Shown: positions 3,446 through 64,000 of the stretch, piece after piece | How positions within the stretch are numbered: position 1 is the first letter of the stretch | Layout: each line of letters begins with the position of its first letter | NCBI GenBank assembly: GCA_028534125.1 | Contig: CM052820.1 | Coordinates: 3,844,001-3,908,000, forward strand | Source: Lama glama | Lineage: Eukaryota | Length of the DNA stretch: 64,000 nucleotides | Reading direction: 5' to 3' | Notes under the pieces: model-generated | The model's database searches: none | The model's input: the letters and a program-made list of their open reading frames with translations, nothing else | What the model was told of the DNA's origin: nothing | Position numbers and translations under genes: made by a program

Positions 3446-4409
3446 TGTTCTGGGCTGAATTACATCCCCCCAGACTTTTATGTTAAAGTCCTGACCCATA
3501 TATTTGGAGACAGGGCCTGTAAAGGCTTATGGGTAAGTGAGGCCTTTAGGACGGGCCCTAACGCAGTGTGACTGGAGTTCCTACAGGAAGGGATCAGGGC
3601 ACCTGCAAACACAGGGAGGATGGAGGACACGGCGATGATGGCCAACGACACGCCAAGGAGAGAGCTCAAAGGAAGGACGGCACCTTGATCTTCAACTTCC
3701 AGACTTCAAGACTTTGAGAAAATAAACGTCCATTTTTAAGCCCCCCCCAGGCTGTGGCACTGTCACCGAGGAGGACCCTACGGGGCCTTCCCAGACCGAT
3801 TGCCCCTCTCCCCAGGTCCTCCGCCTGTGTCTTTTCTGTAGAAAAACTTTAGCCTCCTAGGCCTTCCCTGAGTCTCAAAGAATAAATCTAATCAGAGAAA
3901 TTGAGAAAATGCAGAAAGAAAGAAAAACAGTCAAGCAAGACAAAATAATAACAGTTCATTAAACAAAGTCAAGGACCTTCAGCTCTTCCTCAAGGGCTAC
4001 ACACAATATTCTGAGTGTATCCCTGAGCTGCCCTGCAGACAAGGAAAGCCCCACCAGGTGGAAGAGGTTAACTCTGTGCTGCCCACCAGCACACAGACCC
4101 CAGAGCGGCTGGAGCCAGAAAGCTGATGCTGCTGACTTCTGACTCCCTCACCACCATCAGCAGAATGTCCACGAGCCGGCAACCTCCCCTCCCTCACCCT
4201 GTCCTTAAAAGCCTTTCCCTGAAAGCCATTGATGAATTTGGGTCTTTTCGGCACTAGCTGCCTGGACTCCTTGCTGGGCGTCCTGTGATCAGCACCACAC
4301 TTCCCTTCACCACATCCTGGTGGTGGCGGTGGTTCACTGCACACAGGCGAGTGGGTCCAGGTTTGGCTGGTAACAGACTTTGTTTAGAAAGTCCTGAAAG
4401 ACTAGTGCA
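3446..4409 (+). mobile_element. MLT1A-type MaLR LTR, split by a younger LTR (pieces 3446-3760 and 4376-4409)
   Basis: 5' tgttctgggctgaatt, internal atttggagacagggcct and ttgatcttcaacttccag; the 3' end resumes as tttgtttagaaagtcctgaaagactagtgca after the insertion. Confidence 0.8.
3761..4375 (+). mobile_element. Solo ERV1-class LTR (MER41-like cetartiodactyl family), 615 bp
   Basis: TG...CA termini (tgtcaccgag ... ggtaaca), TATA-like cttaaaagcc, degenerate TSD gcac/gac; interrupts the MLT1A. Confidence 0.8.
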
Positions 4410-5329
4410 ACGGTGTACAAACAGGCTGGGCAGGGAAATGGTCTCATCCACCGGCGCCCAGCACAACACGCGGCACAGGCCGGACCTCCCACGCTCGCCC
4501 CGCGGCTCTCCACTCCCCGCTCGCTCGAGTCCTGCTCTTCCTTCCCTGCGTGTCTGGTAGGCACCTCGAATCGAGCACACCCCAGCAGACACATGGTTCA
4601 CTTCCCCTCCATGGGCTGGGAGACCTCTGGGGGCCAGGTCTGCCTGACTAGCCTGCACAGTTATTTCTGAATAATTACCATTTATAGATATTCCTACTTC
4701 TAAAATATCTCCCCAAATCCAAAGTATCTCCCAATATCAAAGCAATCCATCAAAAACCTAAAACCAAAAGTTAAAAAGTGGGGCAGGAGTAACACCCCGT
4801 CACTCAATTAAAATGCCGCCGAATCAAATCCGGATGAGTGACCCACATGTTATAGGTTTAATGGGAAAAAGCAAGTGTGACAAAAATGACCAGATGATAG
4901 CCCCACCGTGGGTCAGAACAGCTTGTGGTTCTAGGTGCAGAAAATATTCTTAAGTGAAAGGAGAAAACCGGGAACGGGCATTCACGGGAGGCAAGAAAGT
5001 AACCCCAGGTCACTGGCTTCCCGGGTCCTGCACAAACGGAAACACCCCAGCAAGTTCACACACCCGGGGCTGAGACGCAACTAACAGATGGCCCAACGTG
5101 ACCAGTACCTGCGAGCGCGACCACTGCTCCACCATTTTCACTTTCCGCCTCGTTTAAAGTGTTTCCATAGAAACAGCAGGAAGCCCCCCTTCGCTGAACT
5201 CTTTTTTTTTTTTAATCGTAGTATCTGCTCCCCAGCCCTCCTCCAGAGGATCTATTATACCACAAATGGAAGCTTTGCTTCCAGCTGGTGGACGGGGTTG
5301 GGGGAGGGGGCCAAGGGACTAGGAGATGA

Positions 5330-5618
5330 TTCTGGATCTTTAAGCAGCTCCCCCGTGATCCCCCCCAACCTTCTGGTTAGTAATATTTCTGTCATTCTGC
5401 CAGGTTGTAGGGTACAAAGGGTTACACTTTAATTGAGCTGTCAGCATCTCGGGCCATCCTATAAAGCCCCGATTATGCACGGCGGGGTTAGTGACACACT
5501 TGTTATTGTGGGTGCCCTATTTGCGAAACCCAAGCCCGCACCACGCGCAGGTCAGCTCACCCGCGCGACCTTCCTGTCATTAGCCGCCTCTATTCCTACC
5601 TCACCGCTGAGAAAATCA
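5330..5618. promoter_or_regulatory. Ortholog of the HACNS1/HAR2 conserved enhancer (visible part; core 5459-5539; the rest probably lies in N-run 5619-5854)
   Basis: Reverse complement of 5459-5539 is GCGGGCTTGGGTTTCGCAAATAGGGCACCCACAATAACAAGTGTGTCACTAACCCCGCCGTGCATAATCGGGGCTTTATAG, matching the HACNS1 81-bp core as I recall it. Location in the long AGAP1 intron fits. Outer boundaries are approximate. Confidence 0.88.
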
Positions 5619-5854
5619 NNNNNNNNNNNNNNNNNNNNNNNNNNNNNNNNNNNNNNNNNNNNNNNNNNNNNNNNNNNNNNNNNNNNNNNNNNNNNNNNNN
5701 NNNNNNNNNNNNNNNNNNNNNNNNNNNNNNNNNNNNNNNNNNNNNNNNNNNNNNNNNNNNNNNNNNNNNNNNNNNNNNNNNNNNNNNNNNNNNNNNNNNN
5801 NNNNNNNNNNNNNNNNNNNNNNNNNNNNNNNNNNNNNNNNNNNNNNNNNNNNNN
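5619..5854. other. N-run, 236 bp
   Basis: Run of N. Confidence 0.99.
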
Positions 5855-6869
5855 AACGGAATAACCAGACAGAGAACAATGATGGGGAAGGGGAAAAGTT
5901 TGTTGGTTTTCTCCCTCTTTTTAAAAATCATGTTGACTCTGAGTAACACAGAGGAGATGTGGCTGCCCGTTCGGTCCAGCTGAACGACTCAGTCCCAACA
6001 AGAACCTAATGAATTCCAGACAGGGGTGACGAAAAAAAAAAATGCAGCTGCAATACACGACACTGGGGTAACGTGAAGCAACAACACAAAAGCCCCTCCT
6101 CACTGAAAGAAAAGAAACTAACAGCAACCTGGACCCGCAGCCCCTTCTTGAATTTCCTAGTTACTATTATCTCCTGATCGCCTTGTTTTCCTTCCCCCTC
6201 ACCCTGCCCCTTCCGTCACCGGGATTTCAGCAGCAGGGATGACAGGATCTGCATTTAGTGGCCACCGGGTGACACCTCTGGGGCCACCCCTGGACACTGA
6301 CCGCCGTCCAGGACCGGGGGACCATGCGGCGGACCAGAGCCGCTCCATCACCCTCCGGGCAGTCCTGTCCTCCCACCCAGACCCCCCCGGAGGCAAGGAC
6401 CACACACAAACCCATGGGCGCACATCACAAGCTAGCGATGAGCCCCACTCAGAGCCAGGGTGACTTCTACTAAAGAAAATCAGACTGACTTCAGCCACCT
6501 CCCTCGGAAGCCAGGCATCCAAGTGGGTCACAGAGCGAGGCTGGGGATGGAGGGACCCCCTTCGTGAGACGGCAGGCGTTTCCCAAAATACAAACTGCGT
6601 GACTGCACAGTGACAATGTGAATGCGGCAGAGAGGAGCTCCTGTACAAGCAACAGCAGAGCCTGCAGCTGCTTTTTTACTCAAGCAGATGACCCCTCAAC
6701 CCAGTCATCAGCACAGACATCACACACGCCGTGGCAACCGTTTGTTAAAATGCATGTGAGCGGGGTGTCTGAGCCCGGAAGCCAGATCGAACACATCAGG
6801 TAAACTGTGAGACGGTTTTTATTTCTCCGTCAGTCATCCATTAGTCTTCTGCAGGGGAGCTCCGTCTTT

Positions 6870-7757
6870 TCTCCCCTGACTAACACTTTTAAACGTGTTC
6901 TCCTTGGAGCACTCTGTTCTTGCTTCCTTCTAGCTGTCCTTCTACCTGTCCAGCGACAGCTCACACACCTGGCTGAGAGGCTGCCCCTGTGAGAGCTTGT
7001 TTCTTTGCAAGCTACACTCTGCCCCTAGGAAATCTCATGCACGGCCCTGACCAGCTCTCCCTGGCCCGCAGGTAGCTCATTCTCACCCTGTTCAGACCGA
7101 GCGTGCTCCTGTTCCCCATCACACCCACAGCGGACTTCCTCCAGCAGCACTGCCATACTGGTGACAGCTGTCGCTAAGCACAGTGTCCTCAGCCTCCAGA
7201 GCCTCAGCGCCCGCTGGGCCCAGAAGATCCCCCTCCTATTGCCACCCCTCGCCCAGGCGGCATCTCCTCATCAGCTTAAGCACCCCCAGCTCTGGACCTG
7301 CTCTGTCCAGTAGGGTCACCACAAGCCCTGTGTGACAAGTGAGGACTCCACCTGTGGTCGGTTCTGAGATTTGCTGTAGGTGGAAACCACACACCAGATT
7401 TTGAAGGCATAGTAAGGAAAAAAAGATAAGTTTTTCTATTGGTTACCTGTTGAAATGATTACTTTTGGAATAGACTTGGTTAAACAAAGTATTATTAAAT
7501 TTAATATCGCTTTTAAAAAACTCTTTCTAACACGAATACCAAGAGAAGAGTGATTGTATATGTGGTTCACATTCTGTTGTGCTCTGACCGTGCTGCCCCG
7601 ACCGTGGCCGATGCCCCCTGCCGCCGGGTGTCCACAGCACCAACTTCACCGGGGCAGGGACCACTCCCATCAGGCCCACGTTTCTTTCCTGAAAGCTGGC
7701 AAACAACAAATATTCAAAAAATGCTTGTTGAACAAATGAACAAATAACTGAATGATA
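6870..7757 (+). mobile_element. Degraded L2 LINE fragments with 3' tail, interrupted by MER33
   Basis: Pyrimidine-rich L2-like body and tail aaatgcttgttgaacaaatgaacaaataactgaatga. Confidence 0.5.
7299..7595 (+). mobile_element. MER33 hAT-Charlie DNA transposon
   Basis: ctgctctgtccag...acacaccagattttgaag...tgttgaaatgatt...ttggttaaacaaagtattattaaa...tgtggttcacatt; near full length. Confidence 0.8.
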
Positions 7758-10700
7758 TAACCATCACCATGAATGGTAAGCGGTTTCACGGAGAGAAAAT
7801 AATTGTGCAAGGTAACAGGACCAGTGAGGAGTGAAGACCAAATTTGGAACCAAATTGTCTTTAGGTTCCGATCCTTTTCCCCCCTGGGACTGCACCAAGG
7901 ACCTCGTGCAGACTAAGCTAGACCCTCCCCCACGGCCTGTCATTGGGACCATGTGCCTACGCCTTGCACGACACAGCAAAGTTGACTAGAAATAGCACAC
8001 TCGTAAAGAGATCTCATCACAGACCAAATCAATACACGTAAGTCTGCCTGCGCACATTCTAAGTGCAAACTGCTACCTTGGCATAAAGAAAACACCGCTC
8101 AGGGCCTGCCCCCGGGGTTCCTCTGTCTGTTTCGGAAGTTAAGATGCAGGCACGGGTGGAGGAAGGCCGTTCAAACCTGGACGCGAGCTTCTACTGGACA
8201 AACCAAAGGAGGGAACGATTACTCACTTTGCTCCTGGTTAAGAAGAGAAGAAGGTTGACACACACAGCCATGTGTCAGCTTTCAGCCAAGACCCAACGCA
8301 GGGGAGGTGCCTGGCGGGCGGGCTGCCCCGCCTCCACCCTCTCCAGCACCTGAGTGGAGAGCCCCAAGCTTCTCAGCACAGGCAGCCTCTGCTGTGATGG
8401 GAACCTGCACAGACAGGAACCCCCTGGCTGACCCTCATCTCCAGAAATACTCCATGTGCCGTTTTTTTTTTTTTTAATGAGCAGCACAAATGTTTCCTTC
8501 CACAACTGTCTACTATCCCCACAATGCCAATGACGACTACTAGCATTATTACGCCTACTTAATTTCTTGGAAACAGTACTATTGTGAACTGACAAGAAGA
8601 TGAGAGAGAAAGAGAGAGCTTGAGATTGTGTTTTCAGAAAAACAGAGCGAACCTAGTCAGGGCCACCTCCTGAGGCTGCATGCGCTCGGGGACAGCAGCA
8701 CGCAGCACATGCTCGTGCGCTAGTTTCCATTTCAGTCACCTATCAGGTGCTCTGTTACCAGGCCATCCGAGCGGAAGGGGGTGCTCCTGCTCTTGGTCTT
8801 TGTCTAACAGAGTGAGTTCCAACAAAGATTCCGGGCCACCCAGGAGGCAAGATGCAAAATGATTCTCTTTCTCCCAAGTGGTCCTGTTGTCTGACATCCA
8901 GGATGTCAGGTGGAACATTTCCATCAATTCCAGCATCTTCTCCATCATTTTCATTTGAGGAAATGTCAGGTTGCTGAAAATCGTGATCAAACGGCTATAT
9001 GTGCCAGATAAAGGGTCATTTACAGGATTATTCTCTTGGTAAGCAGGAGCCCGTGTACCCGCTAGACCACCAGCTGCCCACCAGGGACACCAGTGGGTCC
9101 TTCCACAGACAATCATCGGCTCATCTGTCTTAGAGTATTTGGGACCAAGGAGGGGGAAGACAGCCGTCAGCATACACACTGCCAAATCACAGGCAGGGGC
9201 TGCCCTGCTGAATGTACACAGTGTGTGTTGAGGACAGATGACAGTGACCGTGGGACAGCTTGGATGTACTTCTTTTCTACCAAACACCCTCTACAAACAT
9301 TCTCTCTGCTCCAATTGAGGGGGAAAAACAGAGACAGACTGCCGTTGTCATCAACGAGAAATGTGTTCCCTAATTATGGAGTAAAAATCAAGGGCCACCA
9401 ATCACACCTCATGAGTATAAAAGCTCTGTCTAAAATTCTCAGCAGCTGTCCAAAATGTGCTTACAGAAATGTCCACGTTAAAAGGAAAAGACTATACCTT
9501 ATTTTCACTCCAAAGTCCTCAAATACCAAAATTTAAAATATCAAAGGATGGTGTTCACCAAATCCTGATTCATCACATTCAGAAAAAAAAAAAAAAGACT
9601 CCAGTGATGTCGCTCTAGAAGTTGACTGTTAATCAGGACAATTTAATGATGAAACACTGCGAATACGGTGTCAGCAAGTTAAAAATGGCCTTGTTGTTTC
9701 AATACAAGAATCAGTTAGTATATACTATATATAAAGTATTGCATTTCATGCCCCATTTACTGTAACATATTAGTGGGTTCAATCATCAAGTAACAACTGT
9801 TTCCTTGCCGGGTTCAGATTCTGGGGTGGGGTGGGGAGTCTGCAGTGGGAGAACAGCCGTGGGGGTCCAGGGGGGCATACGCACGTATAGAGATTCGGAC
9901 CTGCTCCTTTTATGGACCCATCAACAATATTAAATAATTGCACATCTAGAGTCCAGCAAGTAAGACAGTCTTAGAGAATGCTTATTTTTTTAATGCAAAC
10001 GACTGAGACGTTATCAAACATGTTCTTCTTCATTTAATTATTCAAGATTACTCAGAAGGAAGACGAGACAGCAGAGCCTTCTTGCAATTATCGGATTGAT
10101 TCACTTCACTATCAAAATGTCAGAAATATTTATTAGGAAAAACAGACTACAAAAACTACCACCTCTCTGCAAAGCAAAACGCTGTACAATCTTTATGAAC
10201 CATTTGCAATCCTTGGTCACTTTTTTTTAAAAAAAAATCCCAAACTGAGAATAAGACGGGATATTTCACTTGTTGAATGTCTCTCTGATTTAACGCTGTC
10301 CTAGATACCACCCTGTTTATCTAGGATATGAGACTGGAAGGTATGGGGAGGCAGTGGTGACTGGAAATTGATGCGATTAGAAAGAGCTCGCTCTTATATT
10401 GAATCCATAAATGGTCTCCTGGAAGAAAAAACAAGGAACAACCACCCCTGGTTTCAGGTTGGTTAAGAGGTTGAAGGCTGAGCCTTCACAGAATGACTTC
10501 CAACAGAGCACAAAACTGTATTTCTCTTTTTGCCTTGGGTGCCAGGATGCTCAGAAATAGTCATGCTTTACTGAGTGTAGGTTTTCTGGTAAATTGCCTT
10601 TTCCTTTATTGCCTGGCAATTAACTTTTTATTGTTTTCATGAATGTCTGGGTTTCTTTTAGCATAAGATGAAGTTGAAAGAAGAAGAAAAACAGTTGAGA

Positions 10701-11460: not shown

Positions 11461-12420
11461 AACATATTCCCATTTTGAAAGAAGCGGGAAGGAAAAAGAG
11501 AGGGTTGGAGATCTTAGGATGCAGGCTCTAACAGGGCAATACCAGCTTTTCCTCTCCGAGAACAGAGAAAGGGTCTCTGCCTTGGCCAATCATTCCTCCA
11601 ATTTAACTTCTAAAACTTCTCATGGGTGGAGAGGGAGTTAATAAAAGAAACAATATGTATAACAAAATGCAAGGTGCCCAGAGTACGGCTAATGGAATTT
11701 GATGCTGGCTTTAATTTTAATGAAGAAAGTTGCCAGTAGCAACAGAACTGTCAGCCGCCGCTGAGCGCCATTAATAAAGACGGAGAGGCATCAGAGCCCG
11801 GCATCAGTACAAAAGGTTCCCCTCGCTCCATGCTGTGCTAAATTGGCTGCCCAATTTTTCTTAAGTGTCCATTCTATTTAGAAGACAATTTATTAATTTT
11901 TGCCATTTATTGTCAGTTGACAGGCCATCATTTTGGAGCCCGAATTTTAGATGAAAACTAATTGAAAAGACTGGCAGTATTTATGAGGGGTATTATTTGT
12001 CAATTACAGCACAAATACTCCTTGCTACCACCGACTCGGACGCCCCTGCTCCTCGGGTGTGAGGACTGGTACTGCTGGCATTAAAATATGAGTAAGTCTC
12101 TCCCAGCTCATCAGCTCATCAATTTCAGAGGCATGAGGGGAAACCACCTTCACGTTAGAGGGACCTTTCATGGTGGATGGATACGCTGTAACTTTTGACA
12201 AAGGGGAAGAACACATCAAGTAATTGTGCACACAAAGTATAATTCACTGTGAAATAATTCATATTCATTACTTCCTATCATCTCTGGAGAAGAGTCATAG
12301 TAACTACTTAAACGGTCTGCTTTTATAATTTTATACAGTTTTAAAATAATTTCCCCAAAACTGCTATATTTTAAACAAATTCAAGTAGATGTATATGCCC
12401 TGTCTGTCAATTTTCCAATT

Positions 12421-18651: not shown

Positions 18652-18791
18652 NNNNNNNNNNNNNNNNNNNNNNNNNNNNNNNNNNNNNNNNNNNNNNNNN
18701 NNNNNNNNNNNNNNNNNNNNNNNNNNNNNNNNNNNNNNNNNNNNNNNNNNNNNNNNNNNNNNNNNNNNNNNNNNNNNNNNNNNNNNNNNNN
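18652..18791. other. N-run, 140 bp
   Basis: Run of N. Confidence 0.99.
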
Positions 18792-21198: not shown

Positions 21199-21434
21199 NN
21201 NNNNNNNNNNNNNNNNNNNNNNNNNNNNNNNNNNNNNNNNNNNNNNNNNNNNNNNNNNNNNNNNNNNNNNNNNNNNNNNNNNNNNNNNNNNNNNNNNNNN
21301 NNNNNNNNNNNNNNNNNNNNNNNNNNNNNNNNNNNNNNNNNNNNNNNNNNNNNNNNNNNNNNNNNNNNNNNNNNNNNNNNNNNNNNNNNNNNNNNNNNNN
21401 NNNNNNNNNNNNNNNNNNNNNNNNNNNNNNNNNN
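21199..21434. other. N-run, 236 bp
   Basis: Run of N. Confidence 0.99.
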
Positions 21435-30633: not shown

Positions 30634-30853
30634 NNNNNNNNNNNNNNNNNNNNNNNNNNNNNNNNNNNNNNNNNNNNNNNNNNNNNNNNNNNNNNNNNNN
30701 NNNNNNNNNNNNNNNNNNNNNNNNNNNNNNNNNNNNNNNNNNNNNNNNNNNNNNNNNNNNNNNNNNNNNNNNNNNNNNNNNNNNNNNNNNNNNNNNNNNN
30801 NNNNNNNNNNNNNNNNNNNNNNNNNNNNNNNNNNNNNNNNNNNNNNNNNNNNN
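30634..30853. other. N-run, 220 bp
   Basis: Run of N. Confidence 0.99.
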
Positions 30854-53454: not shown

Positions 53455-53706
53455 NNNNNNNNNNNNNNNNNNNNNNNNNNNNNNNNNNNNNNNNNNNNNN
53501 NNNNNNNNNNNNNNNNNNNNNNNNNNNNNNNNNNNNNNNNNNNNNNNNNNNNNNNNNNNNNNNNNNNNNNNNNNNNNNNNNNNNNNNNNNNNNNNNNNNN
53601 NNNNNNNNNNNNNNNNNNNNNNNNNNNNNNNNNNNNNNNNNNNNNNNNNNNNNNNNNNNNNNNNNNNNNNNNNNNNNNNNNNNNNNNNNNNNNNNNNNNN
53701 NNNNNN
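53455..53706. other. N-run, 252 bp
   Basis: Run of N. Confidence 0.99.
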
Positions 53707-53922: not shown

Positions 53923-54291
<369 letters not shown>

Positions 54292-54951: not shown

Positions 54952-55179
54952 NNNNNNNNNNNNNNNNNNNNNNNNNNNNNNNNNNNNNNNNNNNNNNNNN
55001 NNNNNNNNNNNNNNNNNNNNNNNNNNNNNNNNNNNNNNNNNNNNNNNNNNNNNNNNNNNNNNNNNNNNNNNNNNNNNNNNNNNNNNNNNNNNNNNNNNNN
55101 NNNNNNNNNNNNNNNNNNNNNNNNNNNNNNNNNNNNNNNNNNNNNNNNNNNNNNNNNNNNNNNNNNNNNNNNNNNNNNN
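54952..55179. other. N-run, 228 bp
   Basis: Run of N. Confidence 0.99.
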
Positions 55180-60912: not shown

Positions 60913-61323
<411 letters not shown>

Positions 61324-62337
61324 TCATTCTAGAACAGACTCGTCCGCTCAGAGCCGTTTTGACTTAAGAAAAGTGACTTAAGAAAGAGAAGTCTTTATCA
61401 TTAACTTAAAAAAAATGGAGAGTTAAAATGCCATTACTTTTCTGTCTCCTCTGGAAAAGGAAAGAGTTGGATGAACTAGGTGGTTTCCACCGTCCCTTCA
61501 GAGCCCGAGATCAGACGCAGAGACGGCGCGATTTTGCCTCGTATAACCACGGCTCCCATTTTGAAAATGGCATCTTGGAAACGCGAGTGTTTTGAGGAAG
61601 ATACTTCAAGATTCCACCTTTGCCCGCAGTGGAGAAGTTACCATCCCTGGCTGCACCCTCCCAAGCACCACTGTGAGCGCACTTCCTGACTCCGCAAGCA
61701 GCTAGCGGAAAACACTAAACCTTCTTACTCATCCTTTTAGAAAGCGCCAGTGCAACCCCTACCTGCCCAAGAGACGTCAACCGCAGACATGAGTGCAGGC
61801 GAAACAACGCCAGCACGTCCCTAATGGGCTTTTGGTGCAGTTCTTCAAAGTGACAATGACAGTTTTTGTTTGCTTCCAAGTAAATAATTTAGAGAAATGC
61901 TGCAATGGAAAGACACTAGTTTCTGCAGGGCCGGAGGGAGAAGGTAGTCAGTCGTAAGTGAGGGCCGCTACCACACTGAAGTGCAGAGTGGGGTTAGCCA
62001 CTGAGATCTCCCCACAGCTGCTCAACCCACAAGCGGACAAGAACGAGGCCCAACACGGGGTGATTTAAATCAGCAGCAGAGACCGCGGCGCACACCCCGC
62101 AGCCCCGCTCCAGCCAGCATGCCTCCTAACACAGGCAGCATGAGGACGGGGAACGGTAAAGAGTGATGCCCATAAAAGCCGCTTGGCCACAGCGGTTAGT
62201 GAAGGAGATGTTAAGTCAATTACCAACATGCTGTTATTTACAAAGTTGAAAAGAAAACCAATCCACCTTGGAGCTGGCTGAGAACACTCAGGGCTCAGAC
62301 CTGCCCCCCAGCCCCGCCTCCCACGCGCCCGGCATAC

Positions 62338-62465
62338 CTGGCTGATGTGCACCGCGGACACCTGGGCCGAGCAGACAGACGAGTGGCTCGGGGAGCTGGG
62401 GAGCGACTTGCAGGGCCCTATGGACAGCTGCTGCTTCTTCCTAGTGGCAACAATCTTCTGGGCAA
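62338..62465 (-). CDS. AGAP1: AGAP1 coding exon (about exon 7), 128 bp: (V)AQKIVATRKKQQLSIGPCKSLPSSPSHSSVCSAQVSAVHISQ
   Basis: Translation matches AGAP1 at the end of the GTPase-like domain. Acceptor ctcctag|TT GCC CAG, donor CAG|gtatgc. Enters mid-codon, exits phase 0. Confidence 0.97.
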
Positions 62466-64000
62466 CTAGGAGACAGGGGGACAAACGGCATCTCCGTGAG
62501 GCTGGTTTCCAAATCCAGAGACTGCGGCAGAGGCCCCGGGGGTCGTCCCTGCCGTTCACTTTACCCTGATTTTCATCTGGGCACATGACGACCAGAACAG
62601 ATACGCCATCTCCTGGGGCTGCCTCTGGTCCATCCCCGCACCCCAGCTAAAGAAGGACACGCAAGCAAGCTCTGGGCACCGGGCTGGCGGTAGGAAGGCC
62701 ACCTGGCAGCACGCAGGAAACCCCCTTGCGGGAGCTGACCTTGGCCATCCTTCCTCACGTTCCTTCTCTCTATGTGAAGCCACGCACGCTGTGTGTAGCC
62801 CTGGCAGTGATCTTAGGGATGGAAGTCCACTTGGTGGGATGCCAGATAAAGGGGCCAGGCCTTCAGCTTGGCAGCCTGCACAGACCACCTAGGAAGCCTT
62901 GCATGTGAAACAGAAAAATACACACCTATCTTGTCTGAACTATTCTAATAACAGGACTTTTATCCCCCAATTACCTGCAGCAATAATAATCCTAAATATA
63001 TCAGGGTAATTTAACCCGACTTCCTTGAAAATCAAAAATCTGTTTTTTGCAGAGCCTAAAGAACTACTCTGAACTCTACCAGCTACTGCAAAGAATTATA
63101 TTCAAGGGCATGTAATTATATCAAAGACTTTTTTAAAAATTTCGATATATTGCTATACATGTTGGGAGTTTATCTTAATCAATACAAGTCTAAATTCAAC
63201 CAGCCATGACTTCTCTCGGCAAATAGGCTCGCTGATCAAGCATGTTGGATTTAACTGGAAAGGAAGTCAACGGTTAGAAAGCTCTTCCTGCACCAATAGG
63301 TGTCACTGCAGGGGAACAACTACAGCTTTTGTCTGCATAAATGTGCGTCCTTGGGGACGAGCTGTAATTAAGTTCAATGATATGCAATCCTTGTCTTTGC
63401 CCAGATAGTTGCTGTTTTTAAAGATCCCTTGCAGACGAGCACACCACTGTCCTCAGCAATAGGTTATCATCTAGGCGAGCACACAGTGTCCACAGATAAT
63501 TTCTTTTCCAAATGGATACAGTTTTAAGAAGGAGCTGGTTTGTCCACAGCTTACGGCTTTCATGTAAATGAATGATAGTATAAATATGATTAAGTGAAGA
63601 TGCAATGTATAAAAAATGGCTCACAGAGATGAAGCAGCAGCTTCATTAGTTACATCCCACCTCCAATCGGCCTCTTACCATCCTGAAAGGACGGTATCAA
63701 TTAATTTATCTCCCTGCAGCATATTGATCATAACCTTCATCAGCTAATCACGTTTAAATTACAGAGGAATATCGCAACACTCTGTCATTTCAAAACCATT
63801 GGCGTATTGATCCGTGGTCTTTGAAGACGTGCATTAGAATATTTTAAAAATCATTATGTGAGCTCAAAAATAAAATTTAAGATCAGATTCCAACAGCCAT
63901 AAAACATGTGTCACACAGGTGAATGGAAATTCCAAGACCAGAAATAAATTAACCTAAAATCATGATTATTTGGGTGATTTCCAATTTACTTTTTTGGGGG

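Follow-up and report, generated by a model that had tools for sequence, protein, structure and literature searches.

A putative llama ortholog of the HACNS1/HAR2 enhancer core in the AGAP1 gene, mostly in the ancestral state

AGAP1 exons and a conserved non-coding element

The DNA analysed here is a 64,000-nucleotide stretch of the llama (Lama glama) genome, hereafter the window. Mapping of the hamster AGAP1 protein onto it gives three collinear exons on the minus strand, at 62466..62320, 61152..60994 and 54153..54061:

62320..62466, minus strand: AGAP1 exon, amino acids 225-273 of hamster AGAP1, 87.8% identity
60994..61152, minus strand: AGAP1 exon, amino acids 267-319 of hamster AGAP1 isoform X4, 100% identity
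54061..54153, minus strand: AGAP1 exon of 31 codons that ends in RAIPIKQ, the last before the PH domain, 100% identical to hamster AGAP1

The RAIPIKQ exon had been named in a preliminary description of this DNA, and it runs from 54153 to 54061, flanked by a polypyrimidine-AG acceptor and a GT donor. Its assignment to AGAP1 stands: the 31 residues are 100% identical to residues 320-350 of hamster AGAP1 (XP_027298224.1), compared to 71% for the best AGAP3-like protein. A protein search with the exon alone also returns a Tupaia protein and a third protein named AGAP1, both at 97%. In hamster AGAP1 the match sits in the interval that separates the Ras-like from the PH domain. The exon at 62320-62466 is less similar to the hamster protein than the next two, which may reflect alternative exon boundaries or real divergence. 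The hamster protein gives no later AGAP1 exon in 1-54060, a region in which up to five blocks of N could hide small exons.

Further along the same strand lies the element that concerns us. It is described by the following features, in which the sequence used for comparison is a 30.9-kb JGI metagenome contig (Ga0065711_1030980, L001), the single match obtained when metagenome contigs were searched for a 23-mer of the core in its ancestral state:

5459..5539, minus strand: 81-bp cluster of HACNS1 substitutions, putative ortholog, ancestral at 11 of 13 sites, 75 of 81 nt identical to the metagenome contig
5333..5618, minus strand: the 3' portion of the predicted HACNS1 ortholog (546 bp) that is free of N, ancestral at 14 of 16 sites, 86.6% identical to the metagenome contig over 290 nt
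5619..5854, no strand: block of N inside the predicted 546-bp element, 236 nt, starting 80 nt upstream of the core on the minus strand
5134..5332, minus strand: less strongly conserved continuation of the block on its 3' side, in common with the metagenome contig (77.8% in the alignment of 5134-5618)

The conserved non-coding element thus delimited measures at least 485 nt unmasked and up to 236 nt masked. The RAIPIKQ exon ends 48,522 nt upstream of position 5539, the distance that the preliminary description had given as 48.5 kb. Because three collinear AGAP1 exons lie upstream and none is seen later, we place the element within the body of the AGAP1 gene, on the downstream side of the RAIPIKQ exon and in AGAP1 orientation. 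The mouse HACNS1 locus is annotated as "intron (edited locus)" (PMC8758698).

The earlier claim that the element lies in non-repetitive DNA is borne out, as the block 5134-5618 is single-copy in the window, where its other matches extend to 12-20 nt at best, and the 5459-5539 site contains no tandem repeat. Six blocks of N of 140-252 nt occur in the window (5619-5854, 18652-18791, 21199-21434, 30634-30853, 53455-53706 and 54952-55179), two of which bracket the RAIPIKQ exon.

The element at 5459-5539 is non-coding. Its strong conservation could in principle mean that an exon has escaped annotation or that the DNA encodes a structured non-coding RNA, and part of the 1.6-kb stretch around it is found in some RNA sequencing runs, as intronic pre-mRNA would be too. 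The region contains stops in all six frames, however, and the 36 mismatches to the metagenome contig are spread 12/12/12 over the three codon positions. Folding of 5459-5539 gives no RNA-structure signal, with energies no better than those of shuffled sequences on either strand (z of 0.62 and 0.06). We therefore consider an exon or a structured RNA highly improbable. Words from 4000-5618 are present at 97-100% in 14 DNA or probable-DNA sequencing runs under four organism labels. Six RNA-seq runs (metagenomes labelled reproductive system, gut, lung and whole organism) hold 7-17% of the same words. These may come from AGAP1 pre-mRNA that retains the intron in this species, or from a relative's copy of the conserved part.

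Register of the core on the published HACNS1 sites

Few human accelerated regions have been studied as thoroughly as HACNS1. Dutrow et al. 2022 (PMC8758698, Supplementary Data 1-2) list 22 differences between human and chimpanzee across a 1.2-kb HACNS1 interval, with the hg19 position and both alleles of each. The 546-bp HACNS1 element corresponds to hg19 chr2:236773664-236774209, and 13 of the differences, from 236774003 to 236774083, occupy exactly 81 bp (PMC8758698). The same count of 13 substitutions in an 81-bp subregion is attributed to Prabhakar et al. in a passage quoted in PMC10691551. Ten of the core changes are fixed and human-specific, and all ten replace A or T by G or C (PMC8758698).

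We projected these positions onto the window along one ungapped line on the minus strand, in which the window position equals 236779542 minus the hg19 position. The hg19 plus-strand alleles thus correspond to the minus strand of the window, which is also the AGAP1 strand. On this line the 81 nt from 5459 to 5539, coordinates taken over from the preliminary description, coincide exactly with the published cluster hg19 236774003-236774083, and the minus-strand letters given there for this span are exact, as judged by the reverse complement of the window. The description had also given nine human letters of the core; in position, spacing and allele all nine agree with Supplementary Data 2 of Dutrow et al. 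The ungapped projection of hg19 236773664-236774209 falls on 5878..5333, which includes the masked block at 5619-5854. Farther out, where primate-mouse identity is only about 70%, with gaps (PMC8758698), an ungapped projection is no longer meaningful, as was to be anticipated.

Tabulation of the published human and chimpanzee alleles against the window gives the chimpanzee allele at 11 of the 13 core sites (overlay on 5539..5459) and at all three further sites of the unmasked element (236773924, 236774129 and 236774168), that is, at 14 of 16. The core was thus correctly described as mostly ancestral, although it had been overlooked that 5539 (G) and 5512 (C) agree with human. With six differences from the metagenome contig in 81 nt and the ancestral letter at 11 of 13 human-changed sites, 5459-5539 is not an accelerated copy.

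Since identity with HACNS1 was tested by the 16 published allele positions and by synteny, it has to be asked whether the element is some other conserved non-coding element, or a chance likeness. Two unrelated registers in the window do reach 13 of 16. The register set beforehand is nevertheless the unique maximum, at 14 of 16, among 127,510 registers on both strands of the whole window; a binomial estimate predicts about 0.03 registers at this level per whole window and a probability of about 3e-7 at a pre-fixed register. The exact coincidence of the 81-nt span with the published cluster, the agreement of the nine human letters and the fit of AGAP1 context and orientation all argue against this alternative, to which we attach hardly any weight. 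The evidence supports the minus strand of 5459-5539 as the ortholog of the HACNS1/HAR2 81-bp core in a non-primate mammal, an assignment made from allele positions and synteny.

Conservation in a distant vertebrate and two core sites with the human letter

Five collinear blocks, spread over about 13 kb, align between the metagenome contig and the window. Sequence between the blocks is unalignable, so the contig comes from a distant species. It is ruled out as human DNA: the 23-mer used for its retrieval spans five positions where humans differ and so cannot match human DNA, and the contig is ancestral at nine of the ten core sites fixed in humans, at 12 of 13 core sites overall, and carries the chimpanzee allele at 15 of the 16 published sites. 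It contains no tRNA-like SINE, no B1 or Alu hallmark and almost no simple repeats, and has 41% GC. The 64-kb window itself has no Alu- or B1-type hallmark either, by a search for a short motif that makes for a weak test; this tells against the window being of primate or rodent origin.

Positions 6964-7437 of the contig match 5134-5618 of the window at 77.8% over 490 columns, and the identity rises to 86.6% over the 290 nt of window 5329-5618, in a comparison with this one distant vertebrate. The core is the best of the unmasked sub-blocks, with 75 of 81 nt identical (92.6%), and is crossed by a run of 43 identical nucleotides. The matches on either side of the masked block 5619-5854 are collinear, 562 nt apart in the contig and 525 nt apart in the window.

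Two further conserved non-coding blocks, 1522-1847 and 11643-12093, are collinear with the contig, with core identities of 90.5% and 91.3%; they lie to either side of the HACNS1 ortholog, about 3.5 and about 6 kb away. Weaker collinear matches occur at 6143-6239 and 9618-9799. One possible role for these flanking blocks is that of enhancers belonging to the regulatory domain of the HACNS1 ortholog.

A scan of genome contigs with the core 23-mer returned one match, in Fictibacillus solisalsi (NZ_FNHW01000001.1, exact, L002:3332-3354), and a scan of viral contigs returned none. The bacterial match was rejected as chance, its flanks being unrelated and about 0.02 such matches being expected. In a collection of 596 Gb a 23-mer alone is no proof of homology.

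Short motifs within the element are conserved in the contig as well:

5574..5579, minus strand: TGACAG, adjoining TAAT and GGAAG, conserved in the metagenome contig
5438..5443, minus strand: second TGACAG, conserved in the metagenome contig
5389..5394, minus strand: third TGACAG, conserved in the metagenome contig
5497..5502, minus strand: CAAGTG, which the human allele at hg19 236774042 turns into CACGTG

TGACAG belongs to the MEIS/TGIF class of sites, TAAT is a homeodomain site and GGAAG is of the ETS type. Within about 290 nt the minus strand holds TGACAG three times, where the density in the window predicts 0.26. These candidate sites probably bind the factors of the enhancer, and a combination of MEIS/TGIF, homeodomain and ETS-type sites would suit an enhancer of limb and pharyngeal arch. 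The CACGTG E-box is absent at 5497..5502 in both the window and the metagenome contig.

At the two core sites mentioned above the llama copy differs from chimpanzee, and the metagenome contig sides with it at one of them. At 5539 (hg19 236774003) the window and the contig both have G, the human letter, whereas chimpanzee has A; since the site counts as human-specific by the definition of Dutrow et al., A is also the letter of macaque, orangutan and marmoset (PMC8758698). With G common to the window and the contig, the anthropoid A looks derived, and by parsimony over two non-primates the human G would be a reversion. We put this forward as a lead and do not count it among the results. At 5512 (hg19 236774030) the window has C as in human, whereas the contig shares T with chimpanzee and the other primates. 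As the contig lacks the C, the llama letter points to a T-to-C change parallel to the human one, somewhere on the lineage of this animal. That both proposals hold, a human reversion at 236774003 together with the same T-to-C change as in humans at 236774030, is in our judgement an evenly balanced question. The contig otherwise resembles the llama copy in its five collinear blocks, its 43-nt identical run and its three TGACAG.

Proposed enhancer function and significance

The function of the human, chimpanzee and mouse versions of HACNS1 has been studied in mice. Knock-in of the human element increases H3K27ac in the limb bud, not only at the locus but also at the Gbx2 promoter, which lies about 216 kb from the element in mouse, and HACNS1 and GBX2 fall within one TAD (PMC8758698). 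The fraction of Gbx2-positive limb cells is 23.7% in the HACNS1 knock-in, compared to 0.95% in the chimpanzee line and 0.64% in wild type (PMC8758698). The chimpanzee and mouse loci carry H3K27ac in the pharyngeal arch (PMC8758698), and a 2026 preprint carries this work on to the timing of development in the two tissues, arch and limb.

By analogy with these versions, the llama element would control GBX2 in development from a distance, as an enhancer with activity in the pharyngeal arch and only weak activity in early limb-bud mesenchyme. It resembles human HACNS1 (HAR2, 2xHAR.3, chr2q37), the GBX2 enhancer inside AGAP1, in locus, orientation, 81-bp core and flanking conserved element. It differs from it in having the ancestral letter at 11 of the 13 sites of the core, or 14 of 16 when the flanking sites are counted, and in lacking the human-gained CACGTG E-box, and thus represents the conserved background and not the accelerated form. 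The ancestral allele state is common to the chimpanzee and mouse orthologs (panTro4 chr2B:241105499-241106044 and mm9 chr1:91610534-91611083), and with an ancestral core and no human-gained sites the llama copy is expected to behave like these two. [quoted passage not shown] We hold it very probable that the locus combines these properties, as an ortholog of HACNS1/HAR2 in AGAP1 that serves as a long-range GBX2 enhancer with a weak, ancestral limb state.

The target could be another gene in this species, either the host AGAP1, inside which the element lies, or another neighbour, and GBX2 itself is outside the 64-kb window. In the knock-in mice, however, chromatin outside the locus changed significantly at the Gbx2 promoter alone (PMC8758698), and we regard a target other than GBX2 as very unlikely.

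A second alternative accepts the orthology and changes the role of the core. The 81-bp ancestral core itself may be a negative module that silences limb activity of the flanking enhancer, intact in the llama and disrupted in humans through GC-biased gene conversion. The core is treated as a negative module by Sumiyama and Saitou (2011), and an ancestral repressor broken in humans in this manner is ascribed to Duret and Galtier and to Sumiyama and Saitou, both as cited in a passage of PMC10691551. The uniform A/T to G/C direction of the ten fixed human-specific core changes fits this proposal, and so does the standing of the core as the sub-block best conserved in the metagenome contig, as would be anticipated for a functional module. 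On the other side, Dutrow et al. (PMC8758698) and the 2026 preprint favour a gain of function in humans and list the binding sites predicted to have been gained. Sequence alone does not separate a repressor core from an ordinary enhancer to which humans have added sites. We give the silencer proposal some credence, short of an even chance, and retain the HACNS1 ortholog with a weak ancestral limb state as our reading of the locus.

HACNS1 orthologs across vertebrates are included in the public UCSC 100-way alignment (Dutrow et al., Fig. 1B, PMC8758698), and the llama element is what one would expect as the ortholog of this known and deeply conserved element; as such it is already known and adds little new biology. 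We found no paper on HACNS1 in camelids in the literature searched, and the explanation of the llama copy does not call for one. The analysis demonstrates that a known enhancer can be recognised from raw sequence, to the base, and supplies a laurasiatherian outgroup copy of HACNS1. It also flags two "human" core letters as occurring outside primates. If the proposals for 236774003 and 236774030 are true, there would be fewer truly novel human changes to count in the core, and the llama copy would provide natural single-site variants for dissecting which of the HACNS1 changes matter.
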